Below are positions 572 to 60,493 of a stretch of 64,000 nt of DNA, in pieces. Position 1 is the first letter of the stretch, and every line of letters begins with the position of its first letter. The notes under the pieces are model-generated. The model searched no databases. It saw nothing but the letters and a program-made list of their open reading frames with translations, and was not told where the DNA came from. The stretch covers positions 382,492 to 446,491 of the forward strand of contig NW_027192208.1 of assembly GCF_041956535.1 (NCBI RefSeq), given 5' to 3'. Position numbers and translations under genes: made by a program. Origin of the DNA: Calcarisporiella thermophila CBS 279.70 (Eukaryota; Fungi; Calcarisporiellomycota).

Positions 572-649
572 TGGTGGGGGAAGTGGGATTCGAACCCACG
601 CCGTTCTCGTCGGCATACCAGGGATAGTCCACTACACTAACCCTCCCCC
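572..649 (-). ncRNA. Non-canonical tRNA-like RNA with encoded 3' CCA (tRNA-Leu-like 3' half, no canonical anticodon arm)
   Basis: Minus strand reads GGGGGAG-GGTTAGTGTAGTGGACTATCC-CTGGTAT-GCCGACGAGAACGGC-GTGGG TTCGAAT CCCAC-TTCCCCC-A-CCA. It has a 7-bp acceptor stem, a perfect T-arm/B-box, an A-box-like TAGTGTAGTGG, discriminator A and CCA. Confidence 0.7.
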
Positions 650-59954: not shown

Positions 59955-60493
59955 NNNNNNNNNNNNNNNNNNNNNNNNNNNNNNNNNNNNNNNNNNNNNN
60001 NNNNNNNNNNNNNNNNNNNNNNNNNNNNNNNNNNNNNNNNNNNNNNNNNNNNNNNNNNNNNNNNNNNNNNNNNNNNNNNNNNNNNNNNNNNNNNNNNNNN
60101 NNNNNNNNNNNNNNNNNNNNNNNNNNNNNNNNNNNNNNNNNNNNNNNNNNNNNNNNNNNNNNNNNNNNNNNNNNNNNNNNNNNNNNNNNNNNNNNNNNNN
60201 NNNNNNNNNNNNNNNNNNNNNNNNNNNNNNNNNNNNNNNNNNNNNNNNNNNNNNNNNNNNNNNNNNNNNNNNNNNNNNNNNNNNNNNNNNNNNNNNNNNN
60301 NNNNNNNNNNNNNNNNNNNNNNNNNNNNNNNNNNNNNNNNNNNNNNNNNNNNNNNNNNNNNNNNNNNNNNNNNNNNNNNNNNNNNNNNNNNNNNNNNNNN
60401 NNNNNNNNNNNNNNNNNNNNNNNNNNNNNNNNNNNNNNNNNNNNNNNNNNNNNNNNNNNNNNNNNNNNNNNNNNNNNNNNNNNNNNNNNNNNN
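59955..60493. other. Assembly gap (539 N)
   Basis: Run of N flanked by G-rich sequence. Confidence 0.99.

Follow-up and report, generated by a model that had tools for sequence, protein, structure and literature searches.

Retroposons with a tRNA-derived head and a LINE-like 3' end have already been described in fungi. AfuSINE2 of Aspergillus fumigatus combines a tRNA-like head carrying A and B boxes with a tRNA-unrelated body, target-site duplications (TSDs) and an end resembling the 3' UTR of a LINE, and a sequence-table legend marks a "5' tRNA-related CCA end" (PMC5063351). Integration next to tRNA genes is known from another kind of element, the dictyostelid non-LTR retrotransposon TRE5, whose insertions lie 44-54 bp upstream of tRNA genes and in opposite orientation to them. 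The ORF2 of TRE5 has APE, RT and zinc-finger domains, and its ORF1p binds TFIIIB (PMC5911963). In the reviews of 2016 and 2018, targeting of tRNA genes by non-LTR elements is given for dictyostelids only (PMC5006619, PMC5911963).

Here we analyse a 78-nt tRNA-like element in a stretch of 64,000 nucleotides of Calcarisporiella thermophila DNA (the window). A preliminary description of this stretch had proposed a dedicated tRNA mimic, an aminoacyl donor, an RT primer or a processing signal at the locus. Our results point to a SINE head instead: with a probability of roughly 90%, positions 572-649 are the 5' head of a young, tRNA-derived and poly(A)-tailed SINE, named SINE-A, which has the LINE family LINE-2 as its partner and integrates upstream of tRNA genes.

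Results

A tRNA-like head with an encoded CCA

The 78-nt tRNA-like element was located on the minus strand at positions 572-649 by ARAGORN, sequence reading and folding, and all the sequence features described for it earlier were found there. The acceptor stem has 7 bp (GGGGGAG/UUCCCCC), one of them a G.U pair, and it is completed by an A discriminator (A73) and a genomically encoded CCA at 572-574. The T-arm is perfect, with 5 bp (GUGGG-UUCGAAU-CCCAC), an extended D-like hairpin is present, and the sole further hairpin, GCCG-ACGAGAA-CGGC, adjoins the T-arm. The consensus of the A box is TRGYNNARNGG; an A-box-like motif that fits it, TAGTGTAGTGG, lies at 629-639 on the minus strand (head positions 11-21). 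Compared with its canonical place in a tRNA it is shifted downstream by 3 nt, a displacement that had been reported correctly. The B box, GGTTCGAATCC, lies within the T-arm at 586-596 on the same strand (head positions 54-64). By sequence reading, both Pol III promoter boxes are intact. The predicted minimum free energy of the head is -34 kcal/mol (z = -2.25), and an equally good fold was obtained in 2 of 200 shuffles.

Despite these features, the head is not a canonical tRNA. It stays below the gathering score of the Rfam tRNA model (RF00005, 29 bits), which gave no match at E<=10, and its anticodon is undefined: ARAGORN reports 'tRNA-???' with an anticodon of 2 nt. The top match within the Rfam tRNA clan was the tmRNA tail (14.8 bits), and the mascRNA model (RF01684) scored 17.6 bits against a gathering score of 42.5. 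The GCCG/CGGC hairpin may be a former anticodon arm or a former variable arm. In the major SINE-A subfamily its loop is AUGAGAA, with a U33-like base and a GAG reading; the window copy has ACGAGAA.

The 3' third of the head resembles tRNA-Leu, as had been claimed; the 21 nt GGCGTGGGTTCGAATCCCACT are identical to the tRNA-Leu(CAA/AAG) genes of the same genome. Among 58 distinct tRNAs near SINE copies, no parent tRNA was found that matches beyond these Leu-like 21 nt. A genome-wide pattern with the same T-arm and acceptor 3' strand, lacking CCA, retrieved no tRNA gene and only a mutated SINE copy. The genome thus contains no CCA-less parent gene of the head.

The head is the first quarter of a dispersed repeat

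When the genome of 28.2 Mb was searched with its own sequence, the whole 78 nt were recovered at 97-100% identity at 40 scored places among 119 candidates. A 31-nt pattern spanning the junction of head and body (T-arm, CCA and the next 6 nt) gave 109 matches in the genome with up to 3 mismatches, and a reversed control gave none; the copy number of SINE-A, on many contigs, is thus at least 109, a lower bound. An alignment of 20 copies with their flanks delimited the repeated unit. The upstream flanks are unrelated, homology begins exactly at G1 of the head, extends for about 330 nt and ends in a run of A, and the 11-16 nt past this run match those that immediately precede G1 (L003, L016, L019 and L020 are examples). 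Downstream of the CCA, about 260 nt are conserved between the copies, up to ...GGAAAUUAAAUAAAAGUUUCCAUUGAUUGAUC and the A-run. The 78 nt are therefore only the first quarter of the unit, and the suggestion that they belong to a longer transcript or a retro-copied sequence was borne out, as the head is fused to a conserved body of about 260 nt with A-tail and TSDs. Canonical nuclear tRNA genes do not encode CCA and have unique flanks; here every copy includes CCA, and conservation extends over about 260 nt downstream of it.

In the window, alignment and census define a complete SINE-A copy of 337 nt at 313-649 on the minus strand, composed of the tRNA-like head, the body, a 3' hairpin and an A-tail. 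The absence of a T4 terminator holds for the whole 337-nt element; the first one occurs about 70 nt past the A-tail. Alignment with the flanks identified a proximal copy of the TSD at 650-663 (ATCCCTCAAGCCCT on the minus strand) that is identical at 13 of 14 positions to the distal copy at 299-312 (ATCCCTCAAGTCCT on the minus strand). The insertion splits an older repeat, X, whose 5' part lies at 664-716 on the minus strand and which continues at about 118-312. An intact X copy without the SINE is present in L023, on another contig, and represents the empty site: both flanks from the window overlap there by 16 nt. Counted with the TSD, repeat X occupies 118-312 and 650-716 of the window (minus strand), and the intact copy lies at L023:1462-1824.

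A census of 100 copies gave a median length of 337 bp and tails of A5-15 with a median of A10. TSDs were detected in 56 of 76 complete copies, with a median of 15 bp, and in 41 of these 56 the duplication abuts G1. Copies with 5' truncations also exist (L100 and L015). Thus, dispersed copies with tails and TSDs, which the preliminary description had named as the mark of a SINE head and as a result that would refute its tRNA-mimic idea, are what the genome contains (at least 109 copies, A5-15, TSDs of about 15 bp).

The family is young. Among 79 full-length copies, pairwise identity has a median of 93.9% and a maximum of 99.4%, and the heads are as variable as the bodies (minor alleles 4.3% and 5.2%, respectively). 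It had been argued that intact pairing in every stem is not what random decay would produce. With a median identity of 94% and heads that vary like bodies, the stems of the window copy are intact because the copy is young, not because of selection on it.

Many SINE heads are taken for tRNAs by ARAGORN, some of them for tRNA-Thr(AGT). At L009:1501-1595 and at several census loci the program extends the head into a tRNA-Thr(AGT) or an intron-containing tRNA. As a result, automatic annotation of this genome will overstate the number of tRNAs. N-masked stretches are present at 59955-60493 of the window and in many of the other loci, including numerous flanks, and one further locus, L055, has an N20 assembly gap flanked by duplicated sequence.

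The 3' end is shared with the LINE family LINE-2

In its last approximately 35 nt, SINE-A has a hairpin whose loop contains AAUAAA, then UGAUUGAUC and finally A(n). In the window copy, folding places this stem-loop, AUGGAAAUU-AAAUAAA-AGUUUCCAU, at 331-355 on the minus strand, where it is a putative LINE recognition hairpin; the conserved UGAUUGAUC and an A9-10 tail follow at 313-330 (alignment and census, minus strand; tail at 313-321). The terminus of SINE-A reads AUGGAAAU-UAAAUAAAA-GUUUCCAU-UGAUUGAUC-A(n), and that of LINE-2, an abundant family, reads ACGGAAAC-UAAUAAAA-GUCUCCGU-UGAUUGAUC-A(n). A tail of the type ...ACGGAAACUAAUAAAAGUCUCCGUUGAUUGAUC-A(n) also closes LINE-2. The hairpins of SINE-A, LINE-2 and a second family, SINE-B, fold alike, with one compensatory change in the stem (U:A/C:G).

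Upstream of its tail, LINE-2 has a UTR of about 230 nt that is preceded by an open frame. The C-terminus of the encoded protein, read in four loci, contains a CCHC knuckle (C-x2-C...H-x4-C), and zinc knuckles of this form are typical of LINE ORF2 C-termini. At least 150 genomic matches to this C-terminal domain were counted, one of them inside an open frame of 1246 codons, and the LINE-2 copies begin at many different points, that is, they are 5'-truncated to variable extents. A 73%-identical relative lies in a frame of 1372 codons on contig C3, and the same frame matches Exo_endo_phos and RVT_1; it is in this relative only, and not in LINE-2 itself, that the endonuclease (APE) and the RT were located by coordinates. 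Candidate loci for a full-length LINE-2 are the long open frames at C34:32720-33280 and at 773.7-777.7 kb of C3.

Another LINE, of the L127 type, was considered as partner and rejected, as its copies end in ...CAATAAAGGUCCUUUGUU-A(n) or ...CAAUAAAGGUCCUUUGUU-A(n), unlike the SINE-A tail. This family (L127:829-2994 and onward, with a 3' end in L013:340-804 on the minus strand) matches RVT_1 at 128 bits and has a CCHC C-terminus, a pyrimidine-rich 3' UTR and a tail ...CAATAAAGGTCCTTTGTT-A13. It has at least 30 copies and is present in the stacks upstream of tRNA genes as well. An 'element C', initially a candidate for a third SINE, was likewise rejected, since it is the 5'-truncated 3' end of LINE-2.

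SINE-A thus displays the combination of features by which SINEs are recognised: a head with A and B boxes, a non-coding, dispersed unit of less than 600 bp, an A-tail with TSDs and an empty site, and a 3' end shared with a LINE.

Related SINE families and alternative readings of the head

Two diverged SINE families have the tail and part of the head in common with SINE-A. Family B (L050:~415-735, also L008) has a diverged tRNA-like head, GCGGGUUCGAACCCCGC-AAUCCCC-ACCA-GCACU, and shares with SINE-A the terminal hairpin/UGAUUGAUC-A(n); a tRNA-Ala lies about 12 nt from the 5' end of family B. At L085:418-552 on the minus strand, a third variant of the head was found. The longest block that is invariant over the three families is CCCCACCAGCAC, which includes the encoded CCA, and the TCGAA core of the B box is invariant together with the flanking CCC. 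Covariation in the head across families is confined to one compensatory pair in the T-stem (U:A to C:G), and no alignment with SINE-A was obtained for the 5' halves of family B and the 'third' family. As judged from these sequences, structural conservation of the head across families is weak.

Substitutions accrue in the heads as fast as in the bodies, and both the mascRNA and the tRNA models score far under their thresholds; together with the A-tails, the TSDs peculiar to each locus, the 5' truncations, the empty site and the 3' end held in common with a LINE, this makes it very unlikely that the heads form a multi-copy family of functional tRNA-like genes (a mimic, an aminoacyl donor or a regulatory RNA), with each copy a Pol III gene and the 260 nt its trailer, even though every stem pairs, both promoter boxes are intact, A73 is encoded along with CCA, the layout is like that of mascRNA (17.6 bits) and the block CCCCACCAGCAC does not vary over three families. 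The interpretation given previously therefore stands in part: the element is tRNA-derived, with intact A and B boxes and a Leu-like 3' third, and the idea of a stand-alone tRNA mimic is abandoned.

According to the classical model, tRNA-SINEs that carry CCA derive from strong-stop DNA. An origin of this kind is echoed in the conclusions of PMC5911963, and together with a plus strand that opens with TGG and goes on as the complement of the 3' end of a tRNA, as in a primer-binding site (PBS), it would speak for a relic of LTR-retrotransposon priming, either a primer tRNA with its CCA joined to minus-strand strong-stop DNA or an extended plus-strand PBS (TGGTGGGGGAAG...). However, none of the copies has an LTR beside it, the stretch bordering the supposed PBS ends in ...GTGC and not in CA, the TSDs measure about 15 bp and not 4-6 bp, and poly(A) tails occur together with a 3' hairpin of the LINE type, so that such a relic is scarcely credible. 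The strong-stop model could describe the remote origin of the SINE-A family, not its present copies.

SINE-A lands at a fixed distance from tRNA genes

The SINE reading of the head is accompanied by a distinctive pattern of landing sites. In the window, a tRNA-Val(AAC) gene, the Pol III gene that marks the integration site, lies on the plus strand at 735-808 (63.8 bits; ARAGORN and Rfam). Its divergent orientation and its distance of 85 bp from the 5' end of the SINE agree with what had been described. A search of public sequencing runs gave none that contains the locus; the highest share of sampled words was 0.09, and it probably stems from this conserved tRNA-Val.

A tRNA gene was then sought up to 750 bp upstream of the head in the 100 copies of the census. 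One was present in 68 of the 100 copies, and in all 68 the two are divergent. The gap between them is 75-100 bp in 52 of these copies, with a mode of 85, and 33-50 bp in 4, and the remaining 12 have a larger gap, behind other inserted elements. A further 20 of the 100 copies were uninformative owing to N masks or contig ends, and in 12 no tRNA was detected. Some of the cases recorded as lacking an upstream tRNA are caused by N masks, and the true share of tRNA-associated SINE-A copies is probably above 68%.

The targeted tRNAs cover essentially all isotypes and belong to more than 20 isotype/anticodon classes. The spacers between tRNA and SINE are unrelated between loci, although often made of pieces of other repeats with 5' ends 8-18 nt from the tRNA, and the TSDs are specific to each locus. 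Four independent insertions are found in the same X repeat, at X offsets of 0, +2, +7 and +8 nt, and all of them lie 83-85 bp from the tRNA, with X beginning correspondingly closer to the tRNA in these four loci. Because the offsets in X vary and the distance to the tRNA remains constant, the spacing is measured from the tRNA gene and not read from the local sequence.

Fragments of LINE-2 are located either 83 bp from a tRNA or about 432-462 bp from it, in the same orientation as the SINE; the loci were picked because they contain SINE-A, so that they are a biased sample of LINE-2 targeting. The larger distance equals 85 bp plus one SINE and one TSD, as would be expected if LINE-2 inserted at the same point and SINEs arriving later displaced it outward.

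That there is no targeting at all, and that random insertions merely survive in gene-free zones beside tRNA genes or that the SINE was duplicated along with them, might be proposed for a compact genome with several repeat families stacked upstream of tRNAs, but neither selection nor duplication can yield a single orientation in 68 of 68 cases and a spacing within +/-5 bp, and the more than 20 isotype/anticodon classes, unrelated spacers, locus-specific TSDs and differing X offsets at constant tRNA distance leave this proposal hardly any weight. The divergent 85-bp spacing is the signature of targeted integration. For the window, this means that the proposed tie of the element to the Pol III machinery of the neighbouring tRNA-Val is retained, and that the shared regulation of two genes implied by their arrangement is not, the spacing being that of targeted integration.

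Several further observations concern the sequences upstream of tRNA genes. In two loci counted as having no tRNA, L054 and L069, tRNA-like reverse-complement fragments are present 60-130 nt upstream of the heads (such as ...CCACTAGACTTAACC... and ...CTCTTAACCACTGTGCC...), for which ARAGORN made no call. The 5' end of repeat X in the window lies 18 nt from tRNA-Val. The 5' part of X has at least 19 copies in the genome; they begin 8-18 nt upstream of tRNA genes, to which they are arranged head-to-head, and X would be a second tRNA-proximal family, with a spacing different from that of SINE-A. A motif similar to TGTTRYG begins other spacer families, too. Finally, positions 40-115 of the window (minus strand) hold a 76-nt piece that ends in ...CTGCGCCACTACAAGCC-A10, with the A10 at 51-60, and that is found on its own at more than 15 sites. 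In the stack distal to tRNA-Val, this piece probably represents the 3' terminus of a further poly(A) retroposon.

Discussion

Our results identify the tRNA-like element at 572-649 as the likely promoter-bearing head of one SINE-A insertion, and apart from being such an insertion the window copy has no separate function. From the arrangement of its parts, a retrotransposition cycle can be proposed. The A and B boxes of the head would drive Pol III transcription through the T4-free body. The ORF2 protein of LINE-2 would recognise the common 3' hairpin and tail in trans and copy the SINE RNA by target-primed reverse transcription. The LINE machinery may be held in place by a tether, the Pol III pre-initiation complex (TFIIIB/TFIIIC) assembled on tRNA genes, as for TRE5-A of Dictyostelium, and such tethering would fix both distance and orientation. 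More speculatively, the encoded CCA might be kept because CCA after the discriminator inhibits tRNase Z, so that head and body would stay one RNA.

Taken together, these steps lead to a tentative proposal, which we hold to be possible though not probable: SINE-A and LINE-2 may be the first fungal LINE/SINE pair to measure distance from Pol III tRNA genes, convergent with Dictyostelium TRE5, with the CCA of the head acting as a tRNase Z shield that keeps the promoter head joined to the LINE-recognised tail, and with an 85-bp distance that would fit two back-to-back TFIIIB complexes, that of the tRNA gene and that of the SINE. In the literature covered, which was limited and is no proof of absence, we found no fungal non-LTR element targeted to tRNA genes. 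In this compact fungal genome, a non-LTR pair appears to use tRNA genes as safe landing pads, with precise spacing and strict orientation, and this targeting has apparently evolved independently of the yeast Ty elements and of the amoebal TREs.

As for the head alone, two known RNAs are comparable. The mascRNA/menRNA family (RF01684) likewise has an acceptor stem, one internal hairpin and a T-arm and no proper anticodon arm. However, mascRNA is released from the 3' end of a lncRNA made by Pol II, and its CCA is added post-transcriptionally, whereas the head is the 5' end of a retroposon and has its CCA encoded. With the class II tRNA-Leu of the same genome, the head shares A73 and the 21 identical nucleotides, which reach from the last part of the variable arm through the T-arm to the first base of the acceptor; the two are unrelated in the acceptor stem, the D-arm and the middle region, and the head measures 75 nt as opposed to 82-84 nt.

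As a SINE, SINE-A is of an ordinary kind, given that tRNA-SINEs with LINE-like 3' ends have been reported from fungi (PMC5063351). It has in common with AfuSINE2 the A/B-box tRNA head, the tRNA-unrelated body, the TSDs and the end resembling a LINE 3' UTR. SINE-A differs from AfuSINE2 in being a young family with many copies (at least 109, with identities of up to 99.4%), and further in its true A-tail, its hairpin of the stringent type and a head without recognisable anticodon arm or variable loop. SINE-A also lies at a fixed distance from tRNA genes, a pattern that the available part of PMC5063351 does not mention for AfuSINE2. It is this tRNA-gene-targeted integration that is unusual in SINE-A.

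In this respect, the closest counterparts are TRE5-A of Dictyostelium and other dictyostelid elements, which, like SINE-A and apparently LINE-2, insert at a fixed distance upstream of tRNA genes and in opposite orientation (PMC5911963, PMC5006619). The two systems further appear to agree in having an APE-type LINE, an ORF2 with APE, RT and a zinc knuckle, and serial stacks of insertions, although APE and RT are known here from the 73%-identical relative. They differ in spacing, which is about 85 bp for SINE-A and 44-54 bp for TRE5, and in the host, which is here a fungus. Contact with TFIIIB is reported for TRE5, whereas for SINE-A and LINE-2 we infer it by analogy. The main amplifying member in the fungal system is a tRNA-headed SINE, and none is given for TRE5 in PMC5911963 and PMC5006619. 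A fungal example with an abundant tRNA-headed SINE would thus provide, next to the dictyostelid elements, a second independent system for studying the recognition of the Pol III pre-initiation complex by a LINE of the APE type.
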